Under the pieces are notes generated by a model. The model had not been told where the DNA came from. It did no database searches and worked only from the letters and a program-made list of their open reading frames with translations. A stretch of DNA of 64,000 nucleotides from Paraphysomonas bandaiensis. Taxonomy: Eukaryota > Protista > Chrysophyceae. How positions within the stretch are numbered: the stretch's first letter is position 1; every line of letters begins with the position of its first letter. Of the stretch, positions 413 through 16,523 are shown in pieces. The stretch spans positions 1 through 64,000 of the forward strand of contig CBFFRP010000164.1 in assembly GCA_965644295.1 (NCBI GenBank). The letters are read 5' to 3'. Made by a program: the position numbers and the translations under genes.

Positions 413-1400
413 TCATAGAGTGGTCTTGGTACAAAGGGCCCGTCGTAACCCCAGTTGCAGGGGAAGAGGGATTTTCGAGCGGGGGTGGAGTGGTTCCTGG
501 CATGTCGCTGAGCCCGGATCAAGAAGGGATTTCCACCATGTAGGGTCATCCTGGAGCTGTTGTGCTACAGGGTCAAGTCCAGGAGGTTTGGCATGATGTT
601 CACGGAAGTGCGCATTAATGCCTTCATGAATGTCTTGCGGTGTTGTGAGGATGTGTCCGTCAGTTGTTTTCACCGTGGTAAGTCGGAGTGGTGTTTTGAC
701 CTTGAGACCAATTTTCTGAAGAATTGCTTGAAGTCTTTTCTGCTGTAGCAGTGCCTCCATCTGATTGGTGCGAGCCGTGAGTCTAGTCCGCATTTCTGTC
801 CTGGCTCTTCCATGAAGAAGTCCTCTCAGTCGCAAGGCAATTCGGAGAAGGTTTTTCTTGGTGGCTTGCTTTTCGTTCCAACCCAGGATTACTCGTGGGT
901 CCGCGTTGCGATGGCTGCACCAGAAGTTGATGTCTGATATGCCTTTGATGTGACCCTGAGAACTCCTGAGATAGGAGTCCCATCGGATGAACCATGCAGT
1001 GATGATTTCGTGGGTGGGGGTGGTTGCCGGGGGGCCGCGCCATCCATGCCGTTTGTATCCGGCAGAATTGAACATCTTTTGGATAATCCGCAAAACCATG
1101 ATCATTCCTTCCTGTATTACTCTCATTTCCGGGGAAAAGCCATTCTTGAACTTTGAGCGTTTGCGCTGACAACGTTCGTGTAGTCGTGTGCTATAAGTAC
1201 ATGCAGGACGCTTCGCTTCAAGCGAAGCCTGGAGGGTTATGTGATGGATGGCCGCTAGTCTGTTGGCTGCCACCTCAGGAGGGAGTATGGCAGACGATCC
1301 GTTGTCTAAATGTGGTAGTTGTGCATGAAGTTGGAGGAGTCTTGCGGTGTATGCCTGTACTTCCTTGGAGTCCTTCGGGTTTACATTGAGACGGGGGGAT
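413..1400 (-). pseudogene. LINE polyprotein part 2 (APE-to-RT linker), frameshifted and ending before any RT
   Basis: Removing one G from G6 at 1393-1398 joins ...HLRIP to RLNVNPKDSKEVQAY.... The frame stops at 413 and no RT motifs were seen in 1-412. Confidence 0.75.
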
Positions 1401-4400
1401 TCGGAGGTGCGACTCAGGTGGTCGAGGGTCAAGATTGACTGGTACAGTGAAACCGACCCAGACCGGTCGATGATCGAAGGCTGCTGCGAGTAGTGAGGGG
1501 GAGTCAAGGCAGCCAGTGTCCGTAACAGACATGTTCGGAAGTAACGGCGTGTGTAGAATATGATCGATCCGCGATATTCCTTTGTCTAATCTGTGGAAGG
1601 TATGATATGTTTTCCTGGGTAGGAGAAGCTCATGGAGTGGTGCAGCCAGTTGGAGTTTGTCGGCAAGTGGTCGTATGTCTCTGCCTTTCGGATTTGTCTC
1701 CATGGAGCCATTGAAGTCGCCGGCGACAATGACAGTATGGTCCTTGGCTCTGGCTTTAGTGACCCATTTCGTAAGGATGTTGCATAGGAGCTTGTAGGGG
1801 TCAGCAGTACAGATACCACGGGACGCTCTCCCTAGCTTGGTCAATTTGCTCCATAATGTGCAAGAGCCTGGCGTGGATGGCTTCGGGGGTAGATAGACGC
1901 TTATTAGTACTAGGGTGTGCGCCACCGACGTTTTGAACTCTAGTCGGCTCACTAAACCAAGTCCCGTAAAGTCAGCCTTTGTGAAGGCGAGACGGCGCTT
2001 CCAGTATTCGCTGATTATGACTACTGTACCCCCCATTAGTGGGTCTCTTGAAGTCAGTTTTGGCTGCTTGCTGAGGAAGAGGCATATTCTTGATCCCTGG
2101 ATTGCATCTTCTATGATACGTGTGAAGAAGTTGGCCTGAGTTTCTGTTAGACGGACATCCTGTAATAGGAGCACGTCCAATTTTTGCCGCTTAAAGTGTC
2201 GGATGATAGCTTGGACTTTGCCTGTGTGAGATGCCGGATTGCCATTTGTGTTCCATGTGGAGAGTCGGAGTCCCATGGCTGCTCCCGAGGGAGCCTTGGG
2301 GATGCTGCTGGAGGTCTCTGTAGGAGTTCCACTCTTGTCTGCAAGGAGTCTGTCCCATACTGCTTTATTGGCACCGCCTATGTCGCTGTCGTACGCAGCC
2401 CTGGCTTGGATTAATATCTCAAGTGGCCAGCGTTGATCACACCAGTAATGATGCCCGTAGTTGATGAGAAGTTCTTCATCCTTAGCAATGGGACGTATTG
2501 TACGGACATAGAGGCATTTATTTTTCGTGACAAACTTGACATTAGCCATGTTTGTGGCTAGGGGGTCATTAATATACCCAGCTTCGCATGTTACACATTG
2601 TCGGACTTGGTCAAAGCCATCTATTGCGAAGGTACCAGTACTGTCTTGAACTATGTAATCAGAACGCCTTGCAGACTGACTCAGCTTTGTTAGTGGATAG
2701 CGTTTGCCTTTGTACTCAGCAATGATGACGTCTGCTGGGAATGTGTTCTTCGCATAAAGGGATAGTCCTTTGGCAGTGTTATCGGCGTACGCAATGTAGA
2801 ACTTTCTTGACCAGTCCTTGTCCCAGCTGGTGGTATCAAGTGCTGGAGTTGGTCTGATCGTTCGTGTGGTCGTGGATTGGTGTGAGTTGTGAAGGTTCGT
2901 TGGTTGGTCACTTTCATCGTAATTTACGACCTTTTTGGCTTTCCGGGTTGGCTGGCATCGACTTGTCAACGCAGTTTGGGCGTGTTTCAACTGCATCTTC
3001 TTGTGCGATGGTAGTGCTCCAGGGGTTGAAGCCTGCAGAATCTGTCGATTTGTTCGTGCTAACTTGGTGCTGCTGGACGAGGTTGTTCCGGTGCTGGTCG
3101 TCTTTGATGTCCTATTGTTGTTCGTGATTGAGTCCGCGGGAAGTGTAGGTGGAGCGATGGGGTCAGACGTTGAGAGTATACTGGTGGCCAAGGTGTTTTC
3201 AAGAGATAGTAGGGCGTTGTCTAGGGCAGTAGAAAGACCGGCAGGGTCTAAGAGGAAGTAGTGAGCATCTTGTAGTATGACATGGTAGTAGTTATCACGA
3301 ATAGCGTTCCTAAGTTCCTCCACCTTCCATGCGATGTTATAAGCTGCTTTGTCAGTAGGGATGCCTACAATGCTGAGATAATTACCATTTTGCGCCCACG
3401 TCGTGCAGGGGTTGATAGTAGAGGCTAAAAGGTGGACCTCTCGCACTGAGAGCCAGTGAGTTATGTCGTCCTCCGTAGTGTATGTTGTTTTGGCAGGTAT
3501 TAAAAGTGCGGCCTGTGCGTGATCCAACTTATGTCGTAGTGGCTGAAGTGTGTGATGGGCCATGCACTCCCGTTGCATTGTGTCGAACGCTTGGGTGCCT
3601 AATGTATTTATAAAAGATGCTAGCGTGTGACGGTCCTTGCGTTGTTTGAGGTCTAATTTCAGACAGGAGCGAGTGTGTCGCCTGCTTGAAGCAAGAATGT
3701 GCAGATGATAGAGTGTGCTGTATGCGCAGTATCCATCACTTGGGATATGTTGTTGTGTGCGAAGGGCTGAGGGTCTGAGGGTGAGGCGATAGACTCTGCT
3801 CATGTCGCACATATGGAGCCTGAGTTGTCGACGGTCCGTGGGGTTCATCTGCCGTAGTTGACGTCGAGCTCTCGGTGACAAGGAGACTGCAATTACTTCC
3901 CTCTGTTCCTGTTGCTCTCTTTGCTCATGTAGCATAGATGGTACAGTTGACGGTTCAGAAGTCCAGATGATGTTGGTGCTCTGTCTGGAGGTCTGGTGTT
4001 GTAGAAAACAGGATAGCCGCTCCTGAGTTCGTGTTAGAGCGTGCATGATGGAGGTGGGGATATTTGTTGCATTTAGTATGTGAAACCCATGCTGGCTGCG
4101 TATGATGTCATGGGTTACCACAGTGTTGGTAGAAGCGTGCACTGTTAGTGCCTGTCTGGAGAATGGTGATAGCTGTGCCCAACCAGGCGCCAGGTGCGGT
4201 TGAACAGCGTCCCATAGTCTGTATGGTATGGAGAGAAGATCGAGTAGCAGTTGGAAATCCTCCGTGTCTAGATGTAGTCCTGTGTGTGGATTCGAGGATT
4301 CATATTGCATAAGTGTCTTACGGAGAGTGACAGTGGCTGTTGAGGGAATACCCTTTGTCAGGCAAAGGGTCCGCACATGCCTAGATACAACATGAGTGGA

Positions 4401-5954
4401 GTCTGCCCAGGGTTTGTTGCCATTCGCGAGATGCTGGGCAACTAGTAGGGCGCTGTGCGTGGTGTCCAATTTGTGCTCTGGTAGCGTGAATGATATCATG
4501 AGATCATAGTTGTCCGTCCTGGAAGCCTTGGCTATGAATCCTTCCCATATGTCTAAACAGGCAGGGGATAGCATGTGTGCGTATATTTCTTTTAAAAGGT
4601 TTCCCTGTGGGGAGGCAGCAATAGTTTGGGTTTCATCATATCTAACCCAGTTGTTCAGCAGATCGGAGTGAAAGGGCGTGTGACCCCGGCCCTCTGTGTA
4701 GTGTAGGGGGTATGTGGCAATATCCTTGGGCAGTACATCCGGCCTGAGGTCAGGAGTGGTAGTGGAGAGTGAGGATGGGCCGTCTGGGGCTAATGCTGGA
4801 GTTCCCATGGTGTTCAGTTGAGTAAGGTTGGTGGTAGGTGGCTTCCGTTTGACTGGGAAATAGTCAAATAACGTTGCATACGGTGTGGTGGCATCCTTAG
4901 TGGGTAAGGGTAATGTGTGGGTGGATTTGCTAGGTCCGTCACCGCTGTTATCGGAGGAGAATTCCTTCCCCTGAAGGGCGTGGGAGGGATGGTTGATGGA
5001 CCTGGCACGGTGGACTCCTTGCATTCCCTTGGAATGACATTGCAACACATTTTGGAGACGCATGATGACGAGGTCAGGAATTCTCTCGAGTAGCGCGTGT
5101 AGTTCCAACTCCACCGGGTATTTGGTGTCCAGGAAGAAGTGATCGTTGGAGCAAAACACATCATAAGATGGAAGGAATTGAGTTTGTGGAAGGAAGGAGG
5201 AATAGTGGGTGGACCAGTTCGCCCAGTAAGGGAGAGGCGATAGTTTGTCTGGGGGTTTTCTAGGAGGAGGTAGAGTGTACTGTGTGTGTGTATGACACTG
5301 CAGTGGTGTTATGAGTGTGTTGGACAGTGAGAGAGAGCTGGTGATGTGTCCAACAGTACAGGTAGACAGGTACATGGACATGGTGATGTGTCCAACAGTA
5401 CAGGTAGACAGGTACATGGACATGGTGATGTGTCCAACAGTACAGGTAGACAGGTACATGTATATGGTGATGTGTCCAACAGCAGTAGAGGTATACACGG
5501 AATGGTATACATCCTGTAGGACACAGTAGTACAGTAGTCGAGTATACCGTATGCGGAATACAGTGTCTATCCAATGAGATGGATGGGCTATGGGGGTGAT
5601 AGGTGAACAGGGTGAGGGGGTAGCCTGCTGGGTGGATGGACCACAGACAAACCATGTTGGGTTGGGTTGAGTGGGCGGCAGAAGGCAGCCCTGTTGCACA
5701 GTTGAGAGGGATCGAGAGTATTCAGTGATTGCATAGGGGGTCCATGGGGGTCGTTTTCGTGAGCCTGCTCGCACGAGCCATGTTCTGAGAGGTTGTAGCC
5801 GTAGAAAGCGATGGGTGAGACGAAGTTGTCTGCTGAGGGGATAGCACGTAGGTGCGGTCAGCGCTGCATTGGTGCAGGCACGTGGTTTAACTGAAGTAGT
5901 TGAGTAGGGTGAAGGTTGCAAGGCCAGGCAGGGGGCTTGGAGCGTGTACAACAT
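1275..5954 (-). CDS. LINE polyprotein part 1: OTU-like protease (~3250-3750), SET domain (~2440-2790), APE endonuclease (~1455-2275)
   Basis: OTU: IPSDGYC ... HWLSVREV ... DAHYF. SET: KGLSLYA, IAEYKG, AGYINDP, IAKDEELLINYGHHYW. APE: STWNTNG, LLLQD, SVYLPP, AGDFNG, SRIDHI, FDHRPV. The true start may lie downstream of 5954. Confidence 0.85.
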   Translation of the reverse strand: MLYTLQAPCLALQPSPYSTTSVKPRACTNAALTAPTCYPLSRQLRLTHRFLRLQPLRTWLVRAGSRKRPPWTPYAITEYSRSLSTVQQGCLLPPTQPNPTWFVCGPSTQQATPSPCSPITPIAHPSHWIDTVFRIRYTRLLYYCVLQDVYHSVYTSTAVGHITIYMYLSTCTVGHITMSMYLSTCTVGHITMSMYLSTCTVGHITSSLSLSNTLITPLQCHTHTQYTLPPPRKPPDKLSPLPYWANWSTHYSSFLPQTQFLPSYDVFCSNDHFFLDTKYPVELELHALLERIPDLVIMRLQNVLQCHSKGMQGVHRARSINHPSHALQGKEFSSDNSGDGPSKSTHTLPLPTKDATTPYATLFDYFPVKRKPPTTNLTQLNTMGTPALAPDGPSSLSTTTPDLRPDVLPKDIATYPLHYTEGRGHTPFHSDLLNNWVRYDETQTIAASPQGNLLKEIYAHMLSPACLDIWEGFIAKASRTDNYDLMISFTLPEHKLDTTHSALLVAQHLANGNKPWADSTHVVSRHVRTLCLTKGIPSTATVTLRKTLMQYESSNPHTGLHLDTEDFQLLLDLLSIPYRLWDAVQPHLAPGWAQLSPFSRQALTVHASTNTVVTHDIIRSQHGFHILNATNIPTSIMHALTRTQERLSCFLQHQTSRQSTNIIWTSEPSTVPSMLHEQREQQEQREVIAVSLSPRARRQLRQMNPTDRRQLRLHMCDMSRVYRLTLRPSALRTQQHIPSDGYCAYSTLYHLHILASSRRHTRSCLKLDLKQRKDRHTLASFINTLGTQAFDTMQRECMAHHTLQPLRHKLDHAQAALLIPAKTTYTTEDDITHWLSVREVHLLASTINPCTTWAQNGNYLSIVGIPTDKAAYNIAWKVEELRNAIRDNYYHVILQDAHYFLLDPAGLSTALDNALLSLENTLATSILSTSDPIAPPTLPADSITNNNRTSKTTSTGTTSSSSTKLARTNRQILQASTPGALPSHKKMQLKHAQTALTSRCQPTRKAKKVVNYDESDQPTNLHNSHQSTTTRTIRPTPALDTTSWDKDWSRKFYIAYADNTAKGLSLYAKNTFPADVIIAEYKGKRYPLTKLSQSARRSDYIVQDSTGTFAIDGFDQVRQCVTCEAGYINDPLATNMANVKFVTKNKCLYVRTIRPIAKDEELLINYGHHYWCDQRWPLEILIQARAAYDSDIGGANKAVWDRLLADKSGTPTETSSSIPKAPSGAAMGLRLSTWNTNGNPASHTGKVQAIIRHFKRQKLDVLLLQDVRLTETQANFFTRIIEDAIQGSRICLFLSKQPKLTSRDPLMGGTVVIISEYWKRRLAFTKADFTGLGLVSRLEFKTSVAHTLVLISVYLPPKPSTPGSCTLWSKLTKLGRASRGICTADPYKLLCNILTKWVTKARAKDHTVIVAGDFNGSMETNPKGRDIRPLADKLQLAAPLHELLLPRKTYHTFHRLDKGISRIDHILHTPLLPNMSVTDTGCLDSPSLLAAAFDHRPVWVGFTVPVNLDPRPPESHLRIPPSQCKPEGLQGSTGIHRKTPPTSCTTTTFRQRIVCHTPS
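5339..5482. repeat. 42-bp tandem repeat, ~3.4 copies, within the LINE 5' region
   Basis: Unit TGGTGATGTGTCCAACAGTACAGGTAGACAGGTACATGGACA starts at 5339, 5381 and 5423, with a partial copy at 5465. It encodes TVGHITMSMYLSTC on the minus strand. Confidence 0.95.
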
Positions 5955-6987: not shown

Positions 6988-8214
6988 TTACTTCTTTGTG
7001 CCAACAAAGAAGAAAGAAGGTGTAAAGATAGATTCCTTGCCACCATCAACGAGGTCGATAGCAGTGGCATTGAGGAGGGCAGAGATCTTGGTGCTTCCTG
7101 GAGGAGCAATGAAAAGAGTTTCAAGAAGCCACACCATGGCGTGAGTGCAAACACGGCCAATGTGGGTCATACGGAATCCGCTAATAGACATCTTTCCGCT
7201 GAGTGTATCGTACCAAGGAATTTCATGGGGGCTATGAGAGCCGCGGTTAGCGTCATAGAACTCAATATCAGTGAACCCAGCAGCCTTCATGCAACGAACA
7301 ATCTCCTGGTAGTGGACAAGTGTGGGAAGGGCATTTCCGACTTCAATTCCTTCCTTGATGCGGACGTGGTCCTTGTTGCTAGGATCATAGCTATCAAGCA
7401 TCACCCACTCATAACCGGCGAATTTGGCACCTGGTTTCAGCACACGGTAGATGCCGGAAAAGCATTTCACACGGTCAGGAGAGTGGCAAGTAGCCTCAAT
7501 CTCGTATGCAGCATCAAAAGACTCATCAGGGAAGGGAAGCTCTTGGAAATCTCCCTGGACAATTTTGCACTGATCGCCAAGTCCCATATTCGCGTTGTAC
7601 TGGTTGCCAATATTTACTTGGTAGTTGTTAATTGTGATACCCGTCACGCTTGCACCACTGAAAACAGCTATGTTACGCATTGGGCCGCCGACACCACATC
7701 CAACGTCAAGGCATTTCATGCCAGGCTTGAGTCCTACACGAGATGCGAGGTAGTGCTCAGCGCGTTTGATTGATTCCATGAAGGTCTCATTCTTGTAGCG
7801 AGGAGCAAAGTGAAATGACTGACCCCAACCATATTCGTAAAAATCAGTGACGATATTATAAAAGTGGTCAACCATAGTGGCATAGCGCTGCTTTCTCTCT
7901 TCCACAGACTCGGTGGAAGTAATAGCACCAGTCTGCTCGCGGGCTCCACTGAACATACCTTCGTAGTCGTTGATTGTGCTACCAAACTCTCCGCCTTTAA
8001 GAGTATGGTCCTTTCCAGCAAACAACTTATTCACTCCAGTGACACTGTCATAACCATGTCCGGTGCGTTCCACATCGCCACGACGCCTTAGGAGTAAAGC
8101 CCCTGCGAAGAGGGCAGCTGCCGCACCACCACCAACAATGACAACATTGTTCTCGGCGTATTTGACAACATCCTCAACCAATTTATCCACTTTGATGTCT
8201 CTAAGAGCTTCCAT
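6988..8214 (-). CDS. SMT1: Sterol 24-C-methyltransferase (SMT1/ERG6 family), intronless
   Basis: DFYEYGWGQSFHFA, LDVGCGVGGP, IEATCHSP and YEW motifs, plus an N-terminal membrane anchor. Start taken at MEALRD (8214); the ORF is open to 8283. Confidence 0.95.
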   Translation of the reverse strand: MEALRDIKVDKLVEDVVKYAENNVVIVGGGAAAALFAGALLLRRRGDVERTGHGYDSVTGVNKLFAGKDHTLKGGEFGSTINDYEGMFSGAREQTGAITSTESVEERKQRYATMVDHFYNIVTDFYEYGWGQSFHFAPRYKNETFMESIKRAEHYLASRVGLKPGMKCLDVGCGVGGPMRNIAVFSGASVTGITINNYQVNIGNQYNANMGLGDQCKIVQGDFQELPFPDESFDAAYEIEATCHSPDRVKCFSGIYRVLKPGAKFAGYEWVMLDSYDPSNKDHVRIKEGIEVGNALPTLVHYQEIVRCMKAAGFTDIEFYDANRGSHSPHEIPWYDTLSGKMSISGFRMTHIGRVCTHAMVWLLETLFIAPPGSTKISALLNATAIDLVDGGKESIFTPSFFFVGTKK

Positions 8215-10697
8215 TATCCTAACGTGTAATATCTGCAGCAAGTTTGGTGTCGATGACAATGTGACAAGTTGAGATATCATCATGTTGAGCCACTCCTGTA
8301 CATACTCCGGAAGGCAGTGGATGAGTGGTTGTCATGGTTTCACCGTTCACAACATATGAAAAAAAAAGTTACTGCAACAAGCTGTGGATATATTTCCTCA
8401 AATTTTCAATGTACTTTCATAGAAAAATTATAGATGGAAAATATGGAGGTTTTTAATATAAAAGCTGAAAAGGCAATATTTTTTATACTTCAACTTTAGG
8501 AAAAATGAATGTTTGTTTGTCGTCGTGAGTATTGAGAAGGATTTTCAGTGGACATATATATATATATATATTTGCGTTATATATCCATCAATTTTGCTAT
8601 ATTTTGTGTATGTGATGCAATTAGATCTCCTCACTCTCTTCTTACAGGACTCTGTTTTTTATTCCAATAAACAATATACACATATGTACTCTGTTGATAT
8701 GGATACAAAGTGAAACAGTTGTCAAGAGAAACAGCGAGGACTTAATAGCATTGATTCGCCTTCAAGGAGATAGTGAGAATAGCTTGCGACAGAAACTAGT
8801 ATTATTAGGTGGCAGTACACATGTCCTCGTACCAGCTCTATGTTAAGAGGGACCTTACATTGTGAAAGTTTGAGTATACTCAGCGTATTGTGGAATAGTG
8901 TCGTTAAAGTAAAATGAATCAACACCGTATAGTACAGTAGGACTTGTAAACTATACAATTGGAGTCTCTGTAAGAACACGACGTTCTCTAATTGTGTGCG
9001 TTTTCTCAGAGGATATAGCAATCTAATTTTGCTGCGGTAAGTAATCATAATGAGAGTAGCGTAAATAGTCACTGGTTACTATCCGCTGTATTTCAAGAAT
9101 CCAGCGGAAGGTGCAAAAGAATGTAGACGACATAGGAGACATATTAATTATTAGAACATCAGTATGACAACAGAAAATGAATATGTAAGGAGTTAAAAAA
9201 AACGAAAGACACCGTTGTTGCAGTTGATATCTTATCATATTTGGGAGGATATGAGATGGATATTAAGTTGACATTGACCACTTCAAGGTTATGAGAACCC
9301 TAGGCTGAAACTTATATGCGGTAATCGCTGCAGTGTGACATATATGGGAGAGAAAACGACCCCTTCAGTAGAGTAGTACCGCTAAGTAGTGTGTAATGTG
9401 TGTTACAGTATATAGACATGTGTACATATATATAATATATATTACCTGGTAGGGAATACGATGATAGGGTGTATGCAATATTTGGAAATAGATACATGGA
9501 GATATAATAATTCAAAAGTACTTATTGTTAAGTAAGTCTCACATGTTGTAATTTTCTGTTCGCATGGATGGAAGCGGAAAATAAGGCAATCAAAATGACT
9601 CATGGAAGGCGTAGGGAAAACTATATTGCAGAAGCATTATAAGTTGCTTCCAATCAATAATATATATTGAATTGTAGACATACACAAGTAGTGACTCTCA
9701 CTACCTTTGTAACAAAATTCACTGGCACTTTATTTGTTGGTTTCTTCTATTGCACAGAATATAATATAGATATATATCACAGCGTAGTGCAGAGCTGAAC
9801 AAATTTAGTAATCCTTATCAACGAAGAAAATGTCTAGATGACAGATAACAAATAACGAACGGAATAACAAGTAACAGTTCATGACTAATTACATATTATA
9901 AAATATTAAAAGCATTGGAGTAAATATCTCCGCACTACTCTTTGGTCACTCCTCTGCAGTACTCTACGCCTTCAGATAGTAAACCAACCTAAATAAAGGT
10001 CCCCAGAATTCCATCTAATAATATTTTCATGGTATCCCGTACATGCATTAAAGTCATGAGCTTCTTGTCCACTTTCTTTCCCTATCCATTCTTCATCTTG
10101 AGCCATTCTAAAGAAATTCAGGACAGTAAGCTTGTTCATTCGAATATGACAGTCGACAATGAAAGCACTCTACTATCTATTAGGTCATTCATTATTCAAT
10201 ATAATATAATATATTTGATTTTAATGCATATAGTCTTCAGTCTTTGATCTTTGAATCTTATAACGCTTGTAGGAGTGACTATAAAGGAGGTCCCCCCCCC
10301 CCTCCGCCCTGAAAAAGATACACCACATTTTGGAGATGATTGTTGGATACTATTTTTTTAGGGATCAGTGGTGTTTGAGGGATATGGAAATTAGGTGGAT
10401 TCTTGCAAATTCCGCGGTTTTTAGACCTGCCAATTCTCTTCATCTCCGGGACGTTTCCTCGTTTTCTGATGTTCTGTGTGAATACAAAGTTCTGTAGAAA
10501 AAAGATTGTTGATGGGATAATTGTGTATGATCCTATGAGCGAAGTGGTGTGAGGAATGCATGCACATCATACATAAGTATATATATGTCAGTGTTGGCAA
10601 ACAATAGACAATATCTCACATATATATACAACATACATTTCCAGCTCTATAAATATAACTATTTAGATTCGAGCAGCACTGGTTAAACGTAGTCACA

Positions 10698-13600
10698 ATG
10701 AGCACGAATTGGGTTTGTCCTATATGTCAAACTTCTTGCTCTGGACATAACTGCAGCACGTGTCACCTCAATCATAACGTGGTACAATTTTCAACGACCA
10801 GTGAATGCACTACTGTACTCGATACTGCAGAATCTATTTTTATGAAGTGTGTATGGTATCATACATCTTCACCACACGCATCAGATGAACTTCCGTTAAA
10901 TATGAATGAACTCTCTATTAAAATCCAGGAGTTTATTCAATCTACTGAGGTTTCCACTCTTAATGAATCGAACTGGAAGATCAGAGATGCTCTTTATGAC
11001 ACTTTACGATCAGCGTTACGTGGAAAAAAACATATTTCACTGCTTCAAACGGACATGGACCGTAATTCCATCTCACTTTATGCTGTATTTGTAGCCAGAG
11101 TCAGAAACCGATTAGAACGTGAGGCTGATATCCATCAGGATGATTCACTTCCAGTCGTCGATAAACCTGTAATCCCAGCTGAAGAAACTTGGCCGTGTCC
11201 AATATGCAAACGCTTAATAGCTAAATGTGAATCCTCATGCTCGACCTGTGATGTACGTCAAGATGTGATTGATATGGCCACTATCGGTACGGCAGCCCCA
11301 TTACTGGAGTCAGTTGAGAGTGTATTTATGAAGTGCGTTGACCACTATGAAAGCAGTAGTGAGAATAATACTCTGGCTCATAGTGAGCTAGTTGCTAAAG
11401 TGGAAGACGTGCTATCGTCGGCTGACATGGTTTGTGTTATTGCTGCAAACTGGCATATAAAGGATTTGGTGGCTCATTTACTGAGATCTATTCTCGGAAA
11501 TGAGAAACAGATAACCTTCAGCTCGCACATACTTGAATGGATCGATGTAAATTCCACTGCCTTATTTACAATACTGGTTGACAGAATTAACGAGAAATTG
11601 GAAAATAGAAGTCTGAGTGCTAGATATTCTGTGCAGCGGCCCCTCGTTTTCACGGAATCTTGGTGCTGCCCATGCTGTGGCGATGTAAATGCTATTTCAA
11701 CTCAGGAGTGTCCCGCGTGTGCCGTGCACAAAAAAGTGATATCTATTTGTAAAGCAGGCAATGTTGCTATTGTAATTCACGCTGCGTACAGTCTCTTTAT
11801 GGCATGCGTCGATTTCCTCGAGGGAGAAGGATGCGATGATGCACGTCGATTGGAACTCACTGAAACTGGAGAAGCCCTCCTTTCGTCAGAAGATATGACC
11901 ACGGCAGTACAGTCCGGATGGAATATTAAAGATTCAATAGCGCATTTATTACGGTCTATTATCTCCGGCATAAAGCATGTAACTGTAAATTCATCGATAA
12001 TGATGGATAAAAATTCCACTGCTCTGTATATGTTACTAGTCGATAGAATAAATGAAAATTTGAACAACCGAAAGCTTCAGAGTATATATAGTGTTGAGCG
12101 TCCTGTGGTATACCGGTTAGAGATCGGTGACACTTGGGCGTGCCCTAACTGTTCCATGTCCGCGATTCCTTCCGACACGAATAATTGTCCGGCTTGCAAC
12201 ACATGCCAAAACGTTCTGAGTATGTCGACGACGGGGCAAGCAGCCCCAGTGCTAAGGTCTGCTGAGAAAATGTTCATGGAATGCATTGACTTTCAGGAAA
12301 ATTGTGCCCTTAGTAGTGTTGAAAAAGCGCTGAAGCTTGATGAGCTGACAGCTAAAGTGGAGACGTTATTGCTATCCCCGGAAATGGCGTCCACAGTAGA
12401 GTCCAATTGGCTCATCAAGGACGCTGTGGCACACTTACTAAGGAGCGCACTCGAAGGTACCAAAAATATCAGCTTCACTTCGTCTTCATGGATGGATTTG
12501 AATTCCACTGCTCTATATAAAATACTTGCAACGAGAATAAATTGTTCCCTGGATCGGAGTAACCTAAGTGGAAGTTATGTTGTCGAATGTCCTGACACTC
12601 CTTCCATGACTTGGACCTGTCCTGGGTGTAAATCGGACATCCCAAATGCCACAGCTGCTTGTGGTAAGTGCAATGTACAGAAGAGAGTGGTGTCGATATC
12701 TTGTAGCGGTCAAGTTTCTCCTTTATTGCAGTCAGCAGAAAGTGTTTTTTTATCTTGTGTGGAGAGTCAGAATAGCGACGAGGCACAATTCAACTGTGAT
12801 GTATTGGCAGCTCAAATCGAGAATATTTTAACATCTGAGCTCATGAATGATCTACTTGAAGCCGGTTGGCACGTGCAGGGTGCTTTTGCACATGTACTGC
12901 GCTCCGCACTCAAGGGAGAAAAATTGATTGAGCTCGATCCCACGACATGGGCTGATGAAGACGACTATTGGTTGACAACGATATTTGTTGATCGCATTGA
13001 ATGCAGACTTAAAGCATCACAGGATAATGCCTCCTTGTCTCAATACCGGTTTAATATCCCACCTGTGGGGCAGCTCCGTTGGGCATGCCCACTCTGCTGT
13101 GCTAGAGTCTCGCTACAAGTCGAAAAATGTGAGTGCGGTGTCGACAAGAAGGTCACAATCATTGCACGTCTAAAGCGTAACACTGATCTTTTCAATCGGG
13201 CCAAACATATTATACGAAGTATAAAAAGCATATACTCTTCAGAAGAGGATTTCAGCGTGTTGACAGATAGTATAGAGTCATTTTTAAATAGTTCCGAGAT
13301 GTGGGACCTAGAATCTAGAAATTTTCATTTACGGGATATATTCATTGTCTTATTTCATCGGCTAATGAATAGGATGACAACTTCGATTGATTTCGATACT
13401 GGTGCAGCGGATATCAATTCACGTGCTCTATATGGAACGTTCATTCGTTGGTTTCAATCAGAGTGTGACAGGGAAGGTATTGAGCTGCATAAAGCACTCC
13501 AGATGCCTTGCGAAGAGGCTTATGTTGATTTGTCGAAACAACAATTTCCTGTTCCTACGAATGCCATGAACTTACTCCTTCGAAGCAAGACATTGATTCT

Positions 13601-15788
13601 ATGTATAGCGAAGGATATCGTGGGTAATGATGATATGTCTGAAGGAAAGGAACATAGAGAAGGCATTGATATGATAGTTGAGAAATTACAGAACAGCGGG
13701 TGGTGCATTCGGGACGCCGTGCAGCTCATGCGTTTTCAGGTTCGAGACTTGGACAATCTGACGAATCAGTGCGATCAAAGCTCGAAGGCTGTTATTGAGG
13801 CTATATATCGTTTCGTTTTATGCGCAGATAGTTTTAAAAAAGAATCTGAGGTACCATTTTCGCGCCCCAAGTGTTCTACGGGCTCAGATGACGAGAGCGA
13901 GGAAGATATGCTTCGACGAGCCATTGCAGAAAGTCTAAAGGTTCAACCTGACACTGAAACGACGACAAATGAAACTCTGAATCCAATCAATACCACAGCC
14001 GAAGTTCTTCAGTGTCTTGTTAGTGAAGCCCATTCATATGACGAGACCGAGGAAGATATGCTTCGACAAGCCATTGCAGAAAGTCTAAAGGATCAACCTG
14101 GCATTAGTTCTGTAACAGAGAGTATTGCAACTCCGAATTCAGCCCATACGACAGTCGAAGATCTTCCGAGTACGACGGAAGCTACCGATATGGATGATTT
14201 ATATGTCACCGTTGAGTGTCGTCATCAGAAGATAATGTCCCAGCCGTCGATATCAAGACAGTCATCCGGGCAAGATGTTCCTAAGTTTAAATGGGAAGAT
14301 ATTGAAAGCATTGTTTGTGACAAGAATTTGGGAGAGGGATCGTATGGCATAGTCGTGGAGGGTACTTGGAAGAAACACACGATCGCTATTAAAGTTCTCA
14401 GACAGGTTGAAGGTGTGTCGTATGATCAGTGTGTTGAAGTTGCGATGAAAGAGGTCGACATCATCATGTTTGCTCAGCGAAATATTGTAAACAAGAATTC
14501 AATCATCTGCGTTCATGGAATCGTCGAAGGTGAGATTCCGGACTCCCTTTGTCATCTTAGATCTATGACAATGAAAAGTAAAGCTGTTGGTATAATGATG
14601 CGAAAGGAGAAACAGTCTTTAGATTCCCTGCTTCATAGTTGCGAAGCGCCAAGGATGGATTTTCCATTTCTTGTGTATTTATTGAAAATTATATGCGATG
14701 TCATGATGGAGTTGCATGAGGTGTGTGTTGTCCATGGGGACTTGAAGCCGAAAAATATTCTTGTGACACATTACAATCCACCTGAGATACGACTAATAGA
14801 TTTCGGCAACGCCGACGTAAAAGTGGAGGATATGCAGCTGTCAGCAACTATGAATTTTACTGCTAATAAACATGGAACACGCGTTTATTCTGCGCCGGAG
14901 ATGCTGAATCCACGTCGTATCGCGAAAGCTTCTCGTGTGACTGATGTTTATGCATTTGGAATTATCATGTGGGAAGTTCTATCACGCCAGAAACCGGCGA
15001 ATCACATTGATTGCAAGGGCAATACTTTTGAATATGCAGTTGCGAGTGGGGCAAGGCCATCCTTGTGTGAATTGCATGATAGTACGCCTCAATCACTGGT
15101 TGATTTGTTGACCGCATGCTGGCATTTCGATGCCAATAAACGACCATCATTTCAAGAAATATTCGCCGTGTTGAGTCACTATCATAATGTACTGATGGGA
15201 TGCAAGTTTGACATTTTCTTTTCTCATGCCTATTCTTCTAAAGCCTTCTTGTCCCACGTATATTGCTACCTTTCCAAGATAGGTTTTAGGTAAGTGTTTC
15301 AGTTCCGGTGGAGTGTAATGTGACTTTTCTGTGATCTAGGGTATGGTACGATGAGAACGAAATGGTATATATTGGCAAACATGTAGTATTAAAGTGTACT
15401 AATATTTAATTTATAGGGATACAATTTGGAACGATCAATGGTAGAAGGGATTCAAAATAGTACAGTATTTATGGCATGTATCAACCGCACTTACCAGTGC
15501 AGAGAATTCTGTAGGAAAGAGCTCCAATGGGCGCTAGATTATAAGAAACCGATTGTGGTATTAGTCACGGAGGAGGACCCATCTACATGGGCTAACAGCG
15601 AAATTATGTCAAGCTGTCGGCTGATTGACAGACTCTACGTTGATCTATCAAGCCTCGCAACAAAGTATGAATGGGAAAATATGAGGGAAGAAGTTGACCA
15701 AGATGCGAAAAGAAGTTTACGTCAAAAGCTGGGTAAACTTATTTTGATACTTAAAGAACTTAATTGCCACGCATCGCTGTTACCGTAG
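10698..15788 (+). CDS. Six RanBP2/NZF-type zinc finger + helical repeats, 2 UIMs, TKL-like protein kinase, C-terminal TIR domain; exons 10698-15289, 15340-15364, 15417-15788
   Basis: WxCxxC...CxxC units about every 157-160 aa. EEDMLRxAIAESLK occurs twice. Kinase motifs GEGSYG, IAIK, HGDLKPKN, DFG, APE. GT-AG introns 15290-15339 and 15365-15416 splice in frame to give DIFFSHA...GFRVWYDENEMGYNLERSMVEGIQNS...FCRKELQWA. Confidence 0.92.
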
Positions 15789-16061
15789 TAGTGATATTCA
15801 TAATTCGTGGTATAGTGAAACTGTACGTCATTGTTCATCTGTCCTTCAGCCAGTGATTATTTTCATTATTATTAATTTTATATTCTTGTGTATACAGAAC
15901 TATTTTATATGACACTGAACTACAACACTTTGTTAGTTTAACTTGCCACAATAAACGTTAATGGGCACAATTCGTCATTGTGTGTGTCGTAAGGTAGGAA
16001 CTCAGGAAGTTATAATGCAGATTAAGCTTAGAAATAGTAAGAAGAATCAGGCTTGCGTAGC

Positions 16062-16297
16062 AATTAATTGGCTTTCAATTTATTGGCATTAATTGCCAAC
16101 TAATTGGATTACCAATTAAATTAATTGGTTTTAGAAGTGATAATTTCAATTATTATTATTCGTAATTGTTGCCAATTAAATTAATTGGTTTTAGAAGTGA
16201 TAATTTCAATAATTATTATTGGTAATTGTTACCAATTAAATTAATTGGTTTTAGAAGTGATAATTTTAATTATTATTGGTAATTGCTGCCAATTAAT
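16062..16297. repeat. AT-rich 60-bp tandem repeat (~3 copies) built of palindromes
   Basis: Units start near 16111, 16171 and 16231. Each contains CCAATTAA-A-TTAATTGG. Confidence 0.9.
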
Positions 16298-16523
16298 AGG
16301 CTTCTGAAGATATGTAGTTATCCCCATTCTGTCTCAAAAAAAGCTTTTTTTTGACCTGATTTGGGCTCAACAGAACGCTCATATTAGCACCGGGCTAATA
16401 TAGACATTCAACTTCAATATTCGGTTCGAACAGAACATATCGTTTATTGAATACGATATTGACAGTTATTTAAAAAAAAATTTAAACCGACTTTATCATT
16501 ACATTACTCAATTTAGGAAGATA

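Follow-up and report, generated by a model that had tools for sequence, protein, structure and literature searches.

The stretch analysed here, called the window, comprises 64,000 nucleotides from Paraphysomonas bandaiensis (GenBank assembly GCA_965644295.1, contig CBFFRP010000164.1, positions 1 to 64,000). Paraphysomonas is a colourless, phagotrophic, bacterivorous marine chrysophyte flagellate within the Stramenopiles. Between 10548 and 15892 of the forward strand lies a three-exon gene whose 1662-residue, predicted cytosolic product joins six tandem units of a predicted zinc ribbon and helical domain, a seventh unit reduced to its helical part, two predicted ubiquitin-interacting motifs (UIMs), a TKL-like protein kinase and a C-terminal TIR domain. 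An initial annotation made from the sequence alone had proposed that these modules form a candidate immune receptor. The features below derive from open reading frames (ORFs), Pfam, hmmsearch and Foldseek comparisons, AlphaFold2 (AF2) models, and public sequencing runs mapped over 10300-16200, among which X5 is a polyA marine metatranscriptome and X18 a DNA-like run.

10548 to 10697, + strand: 5′ untranslated region, from the start of the longest RNA contig (X1)
10698 to 15289, + strand: coding exon 1 (aa 1-1530 and two bases of codon 1531), from the ORF, the GTAAGT donor at 15290 and spliced RNA
10698 to 13523, + strand: six tandem units of predicted zinc ribbon plus helical domain, starting at 10698, 11178, 11649, 12123, 12600 and 13068, from motifs, alignment, profile and AF2
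13524 to 13874, + strand: unit 7, helical part without a zinc ribbon (aa 943-1059), from hmmsearch and alignment
13884 to 13940, + strand: predicted UIM 1 (aa 1063-1081), Pfam RAP80_UIM and UIM, motif EEDMLRRAIAES
14046 to 14096, + strand: predicted UIM 2 (aa 1117-1133), Pfam UIM positions 1-17 of 17, motif EEDMLRQAIAES
14316 to 15167, + strand: protein kinase domain, TKL-like, non-RD (HGD), aa 1207-1490, from Pfam (E 1e-29), motifs and PDB relatives
15204 to 15785, + strand: TIR domain and conserved C-terminal helix (aa 1503-1662), split by both introns, from Pfam TIR_2, AF2 and Foldseek
15290 to 15339, + strand: intron 1, 50 nt, GT..AG, joint in X1, X5 and X7 and not in X18
15340 to 15364, + strand: micro-exon, 25 nt, encoding (R)VWYDENEM, the TIR strand beta-B, from genomic DNA, RNA contigs and the P0001 and P0153 sequences
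15365 to 15416, + strand: intron 2, 52 nt, GT..AG, joint in X1, X5 and X7
15417 to 15788, + strand: coding exon 3 including the stop codon, from the ORF and RNA contigs
15519 to 15521, + strand: codon of E1574, putative catalytic Glu (FxxxE), invariant column E80 of alignment A4, aligning on 'yEL' of AbTir
15789 to 15892, + strand: 3′ untranslated region to the polyA addition site, from a loose end of 23 A's in X1

The forward strand carries two ORFs at this locus, 10698..15293 (1531 aa) and 15426..15788 (120 aa), and between them lie the GTAAGT donor, the micro-exon and the second intron. RNA contigs of X1, X5 and X7 all splice out exactly 15290-15339 and 15365-15416, while the DNA-like run X18 is colinear with 10310-16130 without any joint. 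The X1 contig that begins at 10548 is the longest, RNA depth is nil over 10300-10496, and the 23 A's that follow 15892 represent a polyA tail. Two public MMETSP transcript ORFs, P0001 (1639 aa) and P0153 (1662 aa), read across both splice sites, and in a local script comparison the conceptual spliced product of 1662 aa shows 6 residue differences from P0153. The transcript tag, MMETSP1103, corresponds to taxon 36769, the genus Paraphysomonas, on which ground a diatom origin is rejected. These data bear out three proposals of the initial annotation, namely that two introns hide the TIR domain from the ORF track, that all modules reside in a single polypeptide and that the gene is of protist origin. 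It is a real, expressed, three-exon Paraphysomonas gene; readings as an artefact or a pseudogene are rejected because the polyA RNA is spliced.

Unspliced contigs spanning each intron (15261-15445) occur in X1 as a minor fraction, at a depth of ∼29 versus 229-286 for the spliced form, so that some RNA retaining an intron exists. Public ORF calls of 1531 aa (P0154) and 1543 aa match retention of intron 1, which leads to the stop at 15291 and a 1531-aa product devoid of the TIR domain; this may be an isoform or mere pre-mRNA. The entries P0001, P0153 and P0154 carry no functional name.

The kinase domain appears catalytically complete by its motifs, as had been annotated: the G-loop (1212-1217), AIK (1230-1232), HGDLKPKN (1346-1353), DFG (1368-1370) and APE (1399-1401) are all present. 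The closest solved kinases are TAK1 (E 1.2e-21), RIPK1, RIPK3, BRAF and RIPK2, and the domain is therefore placed in the TKL group. Its catalytic loop reads HGD, with no Arg before the catalytic Asp, and it is consequently a non-RD kinase. Across kingdoms, non-RD kinases have been linked to innate immune signalling (PMC8463890).

On the spliced P0001, the TIR domain matches Pfam TIR_2 (PF13676) with 54.8 bits against a cut-off of 28 (E 1.7e-14, profile positions 1-116 of 122); the score of exon 3 by itself is 28.8 bits. Foldseek aligns its AF2 model (pLDDT 87.7) at a probability of 1.00 and TM 0.53-0.66 to SPARTA TIR-APAZ, RPS4, RPP1, AbTir, TIR-1, SARM1 and RUN1, which upholds the annotated TIR fold and brings it close to TIRs of the NADase type. 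By sequence, the closest TIRs are bacterial-type (PdTIR, AbTir, TcpB and Cat1). An alignment of 13 TIRs from cassette relatives and paralogues of this genome holds five invariant positions, one of which is E1574 of FCRKEL, the alpha-C Glu that had been singled out at the outset. The AbTir counterpart of this residue is the Glu of WxxxE, and E1574 lines up with the EL of both AbTir and PdTIR. NADase activity depends on the Glu of the alpha-C helix (PMC11374754). Judged from the model, the domain belongs to the NAD+-cleaving structural class with a Glu at the catalytic position, and an NADase role is predicted for it. Pfam reports no match in the protein to the ARM or SAM domains of SARM1, or to the NB-ARC or leucine-rich repeat (LRR) domains of TNL proteins, beside the TIR.

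The C-terminal helix that follows the TIR (15720-15785) ends in a motif of approximately L-x-(E/D)-L/A-x-C-x-(P/A)-S, common to at least five metagenome relatives of the kinase-TIR region. The Cys of this motif could be a lipidation or redox site.

Kinase and TIR also occur together elsewhere. A search with aa 1195-1662 retrieves more than 15 clusters of metagenome and assembly proteins in which a kinase is followed by a TIR; identities are 25-41%, and the matches cover up to 99% of the query. The N-termini of these relatives vary, being absent from some and including a coiled coil in one; that of P0170 contains a strong transmembrane segment (hydropathy 3.15), which marks the protein as a predicted membrane-anchored form. 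In the Paraphysomonas genome, LRR_6 ORFs lie immediately upstream, on the same strand, of two kinase-TIR paralogues, L020 6673-9640 (G000:C395) and L021 7343 onward (G000:C15), and both are probably LRR-kinase-TIR genes joined by introns. In the kinases of these two ORFs, HCD and DMD/DLD replace HRD and DFG, and all 11 cassette kinases checked are non-RD. Taken at the level of sequence, kinase and TIR constitute a conserved cassette that is attached to different predicted input regions: LRRs, a transmembrane segment, or the repeat array and UIMs.

This architecture has a name: Richter et al. (2018, eLife, PMC6040629) termed proteins with 'Pkinase, TIR without transmembrane domain' Kinase TIR and reported that only choanoflagellates have them. 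The window protein has the same layout, Pkinase followed by TIR without a transmembrane domain; its top hydropathy window (1.98) falls in a helix that is buried in the model of unit 3, and the protein is therefore taken to be soluble. The choanoflagellate uniqueness of Kinase TIRs does not hold, as proteins predicted to have this form also occur in a stramenopile and in many uncultured eukaryotes.

Two further TIR genes of the genome, L015 (G000:C111:15749-19033) and L016 (G000:C280:31350-34616), have an N-terminus of ∼500 aa that looks like helical repeats. The tail after the TIR of L015 is SAM-like by eye; Pfam reports TIR_2 only, so that any likeness to the domain set of SARM1 is loose and tentative.

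Upstream of the kinase, the two annotated UIMs (aa 1063-1081 and 1117-1133) score above the Pfam cut-offs, with 32.5 bits versus 27.3 for RAP80_UIM and 22 versus 21 for UIM (PF02809). Both contain the core EEDMLR(R/Q)AIAES, in which an acidic run precedes M-L-R-x-A-I-A-E-S-L, the textbook pattern of an acidic stretch and Phi-x-x-Ala-x-x-x-Ser-x-x-acidic. They stand ∼35 residues apart within a low-complexity, Ser/Thr-rich linker. Both are canonical UIMs and predicted ubiquitin binders.

The long N-terminal array is headed by six W-x-C-x2-C...C-x(1-2)-C motifs at aa 5, 165, 322, 480, 639 and 795, with a period of 156-160 residues. The units are 155-160 aa long, in agreement with the ∼158 aa first estimated, and are 22-35% identical to unit 1, within an overall range of unit identity of 21-46%. 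Beyond the six units described before, there is a seventh copy at aa 943-1059, consisting of the helical part without a zinc ribbon (hmmsearch E 1e-24, profile positions 37-149). A profile built solely from the window's units matches the six units of P0002, an unrelated 955-aa metagenome protein made of units only, at E 1e-27 to 1e-45, and the repeat is therefore far beyond chance. Alignment of 15 units shows no variation at W, C, P, C, C, C and almost none at a second Trp and an Asn. The Cys pairs are spaced by 8-11 residues, and the W-x-C-x2-C-x10-C-x2-C pattern of a zinc ribbon is present. The AF2 model of unit 4 (pLDDT 93.5, pTM 0.87) displays a zinc knuckle and then five to six helices. 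As modelled, the unit is a RanBP2-like C4 zinc ribbon packed on a five- to six-helix domain, a lineage-restricted module.

The ribbon had been labelled RanBP2/NZF-like, and only the first half of that label stands. Pfam yields no match at E<=1 within the first 1050 aa, and its RanBP2 zinc finger model (PF00641) none at E<=1 on the 1531-aa ORF. The top PDB profile matches of the ribbon, all weak, are Nup153, YAF2, RBM10, NPL4 and ZRANB2. Among 1.84 billion representatives, matches limited to profile positions 3-32 are multi-finger PF00641 proteins, including one RanBP2-like nucleoporin. When aligned by hhalign with 14 fingers of PF00641-positive proteins, the ribbon gives a probability of 95.5% (E 1.5e-8), with the caveat that the proteins of these 14 reference fingers were first retrieved with the unit profile. 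At the profile level, the ribbon ranks as a divergent finger of the RanBP2 type.

Ubiquitin-binding NZF fingers, such as those of Npl4 and TAB2, are defined by Thr-Phe immediately behind the second Cys, the TF/Phi signature. In the six ribbons the second Cys is followed by QT, KR, GD, SM, KS and CA, and Thr-Phe is found in none of the 15 aligned units. The reference fingers invariably carry an Asn four positions beyond the second Cys; of the six units, unit 3 alone has this Asn (GDVN) and the other five lack it. The name NZF is not supported because the Pfam model is silent, the Asn is gone in five of six units and Thr-Phe is absent in all.

Fold comparisons of the unit return little. Foldseek against the PDB gives a best E of only 0.2, a wide VIA-align search reaches a best Z of 6.1 with generic helical bundles (spectrin, GAT and BAG), the shape search of the ESM Atlas stays at TM <= 0.39, and the feature search of the Atlas gives nothing usable. 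The resemblance to GAT was considered as a sign of ubiquitin binding and dropped, as the matches are too weak.

The company that the unit keeps is more informative. Its profile finds 171 of 1.84 billion representatives at E<0.001, about 60 of which hold a whole unit. Among 58 whole-unit members, the partner domains are RING (10), PUB (7), WWE (1) and thioredoxin (1), and neither a kinase nor a TIR occurs in any of the 58. Layouts in the family are RING with units, units with PUB, RING with a unit and PUB (one protein), units with thioredoxin, and units only. PUB is a p97-binding domain. Three paralogous unit genes exist in the Paraphysomonas genome, and the two that were read encode RING-H2 with units and a ZZ-like/RING with units. 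A word-based search with the N-terminal region finds nothing beyond the transcript protein of this same gene and one protein composed solely of units, and tblastn of the contigs of the six-unit proteins P0002 and P0003 gives no match to a kinase or TIR downstream. The unit thus belongs, as far as domain matches tell, with ubiquitin-ligase and p97-adaptor domains. The link of the window protein to ubiquitin rests on its UIMs and on the RING, PUB and WWE fusions of unit relatives, which is association and not proof. On the strength of the models, the unit defines an unnamed domain family, folded with confidence and linked to proteins with RING and PUB.

Together, these features suggest a ubiquitin-linked, soluble kinase-TIR protein that acts in danger signalling, an interpretation that is given about an even chance. 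The UIMs, and perhaps the repeat units, would dock the protein on ubiquitin-decorated targets or on ubiquitin/p97 machinery; the units are included because their relatives are fused to RING, PUB and WWE. Multivalent docking would concentrate many copies. Crowding could then drive trans-activation of the kinase, as polyubiquitin does for TAK1 through TAB2/3, as well as self-association of the TIR, the step by which known TIR enzymes build their NAD+ site. Phosphorylation would result, together with NAD+ consumption or an NAD+-derived signal. For a cell that feeds by engulfing bacteria, the most likely setting would be a response to stress, danger or pathogens, and a defence or danger role is plausible where bacteria are taken up constantly.

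Several observations weigh against this interpretation. The TF signature is missing from every ribbon, and the modelled helical part of the unit is without a relative of known fold in the searches run. UIMs often regulate a protein's own ubiquitination rather than sense a ligand. In the TIR, the Trp of WxxxE is replaced, reading FCRKE here and NCxFE in the closest relatives. The gene is single-copy in the Paraphysomonas genome, unlike expanded immune receptor families, and with ∼10 TIR loci in all the genome holds a small set. In the searches made, no other organism has the full architecture, and selection for the whole combination is therefore not demonstrated.

A serious rival, if one on the improbable side, holds that the protein is a proteostasis or trafficking regulator of ubiquitin/p97 machinery, ERAD-like or endolysosomal, and not an immune sensor. 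The units would be adaptors, the UIMs would bind cargo or mediate coupled ubiquitination of the protein itself, the kinase would phosphorylate pathway components and the TIR would be a regulatory or metabolic NAD+ module. This account draws on the RING, PUB, thioredoxin and WWE domains of unit relatives, and it accommodates a single-copy gene that adjoins a housekeeping sterol methyltransferase gene and whose units are old and diverged (21-46% identity), not recently diversifying. It is harder to reconcile with the kinase-TIR cassette, which elsewhere carries LRRs or, in a single relative, a membrane anchor, both typical receptor layouts; moreover, the consistently non-RD kinases and the NADase-type TIR fold point to danger signalling.

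The TIR could instead be a scaffold and not an enzyme, with TIR-TIR assembly as in TLR/MyD88 and the fused kinase in the role of IRAK; this too is a serious rival, though an unlikely one. A scaffold role in a 'streamlined pathway' was proposed for the choanoflagellate Kinase TIRs (Richter et al., 2018, PMC6040629), the ∼9 other TIR proteins of the genome are possible partners, and the Trp of WxxxE is not conserved. Nevertheless, the Glu is invariant over 13 diverse cassette and paralogue TIRs, and the best sequence and fold matches are enzymatic (AbTir, PdTIR, SPARTA, RPS4/RPP1, SARM1 and RUN1), with the scaffold TIRs of animal TLR adaptors ranking lower.

Among the non-NZF fingers of the RanBP2 type, ZRANB2 and RBM10 bind RNA and Nup153 binds Ran. 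That the units bind nucleic acid or Ran, making the protein an RNA-triggered kinase-TIR sensor, would fit these three being the nearest solved fingers by profile and the missing NZF signature, yet it is highly improbable given that five of six units lack the conserved RanBP2 Asn, that ribbon and helical domain form a single rigid body in the model (pTM 0.87) and that the partner domains of the family belong to the ubiquitin system and not to RNA binding.

A bolder form of the danger-signalling interpretation takes the zinc-ribbon/helix unit as a new recognition domain of the ubiquitin system and the whole protein as a single-chain 'ubiquitin-coat sensor'; it is doubtful, and best regarded as a long shot. 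If true, seven units and two UIMs would allow the sensor to recognise polyubiquitin on phagosomes that are damaged, on prey bacteria that have escaped, or on viral factories. It would translate this polyubiquitin directly into signalling by the kinase and into either NAD+ depletion or an NAD+-derived signal made by the TIR. The tasks of TAB2/3-TAK1 and of SARM1 would then be merged in one molecule, outside animals and plants.

Several known systems offer points of comparison. The Kinase TIRs and Kinase TLRs of choanoflagellates share the kinase directly followed by a TIR in one chain, and in the Kinase TIR form also the lack of a transmembrane segment (PMC6040629). They are likewise uncharacterised, and for both a shortcut in recruiting a kinase to a TIR platform is proposed. 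In contrast, the window protein stems from a stramenopile and carries a long repeat array and two UIMs upstream, and the likeness drawn here is one of architecture. TAK1 (MAP3K7) with TAB2/TAB3 similarly unites ubiquitin-binding elements, RanBP2-family fingers and a TKL kinase in one functional unit. In animals, however, the finger, a true NZF with TF, and the kinase are located on separate proteins and there is no TIR, whereas the window protein is one chain, its fingers lack the NZF signature and its ubiquitin binding is predicted from the UIMs.

SARM1/TIR-1, AbTir, SPARTA TIR-APAZ and Thoeris ThsB resemble the window protein in the TIR fold class, the Glu at the catalytic alpha-C position and regulatory domains N-terminal to an effector TIR. 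Unlike SARM1 and the bacterial TIR NADases, it is without ARM, SAM, APAZ and SLOG, has FxxxE instead of WxxxE, and has a kinase fused immediately upstream. RAP80 and other tandem-UIM proteins share the two canonical UIMs, and RAP80_UIM is the best Pfam model. The linker of RAP80 is short, fixed and helical and sets K63 specificity, whereas that of the window protein is of low complexity and ∼35 residues long, and no linkage preference can therefore be inferred. HOIP, a component of LUBAC, combines a RanBP2-like finger with RING and PUB domains, and the repeat-unit relatives resemble HOIP and PUB/RanBP2-finger/RING ligases in joining a RanBP2-like ribbon with RING and PUB. This likeness concerns the set of domains, with no sequence homology shown, and HOIP has nothing that corresponds to the helical part of the unit.

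Work in bacteria, plants and animals has described TIR-based immunity well; in free-living protists, to our knowledge, it is almost unexplored. A 2025 paper on Gephyrocapsa states that microalgae had so far been without a described antiviral system based on TIR (PMC12489294). Literature searches on TIR proteins in stramenopiles or in Paraphysomonas returned nothing specific. The kinase-TIR fusion itself is already known, and what is new is an input region built from an unnamed domain family. The cassette, whose input regions are interchangeable, extends to a stramenopile and to many uncultured eukaryotes, and the present protein is the first case in which it is wired to predicted ubiquitin-binding motifs, the UIMs. 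Each part of the protein can be expressed on its own, which renders the predictions directly testable.

The surroundings of the gene had been described as rich in transposable elements. This is correct downstream, where transposon debris extends from ∼16100, and it applies further upstream to a 1558-aa ORF (1275-5954, minus strand) that combines an APE-type endonuclease with a SET methyltransferase domain and is LINE-like. The nearest upstream neighbour, by contrast, is an intact sterol C-methyltransferase gene (6988-8283, minus strand). A transposon-rich setting thus exists on only one side of the gene and counts for little. An AT-rich tandem repeat of ∼60 bp (16100-16300 and beyond), whose units begin with ccaattaaattaattgg, starts some 200 bp past the polyA site. 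The depth of X18 leaps from ∼107 over the gene to ∼4600 at ∼16100, and the tandem repeat is therefore a very high-copy element.

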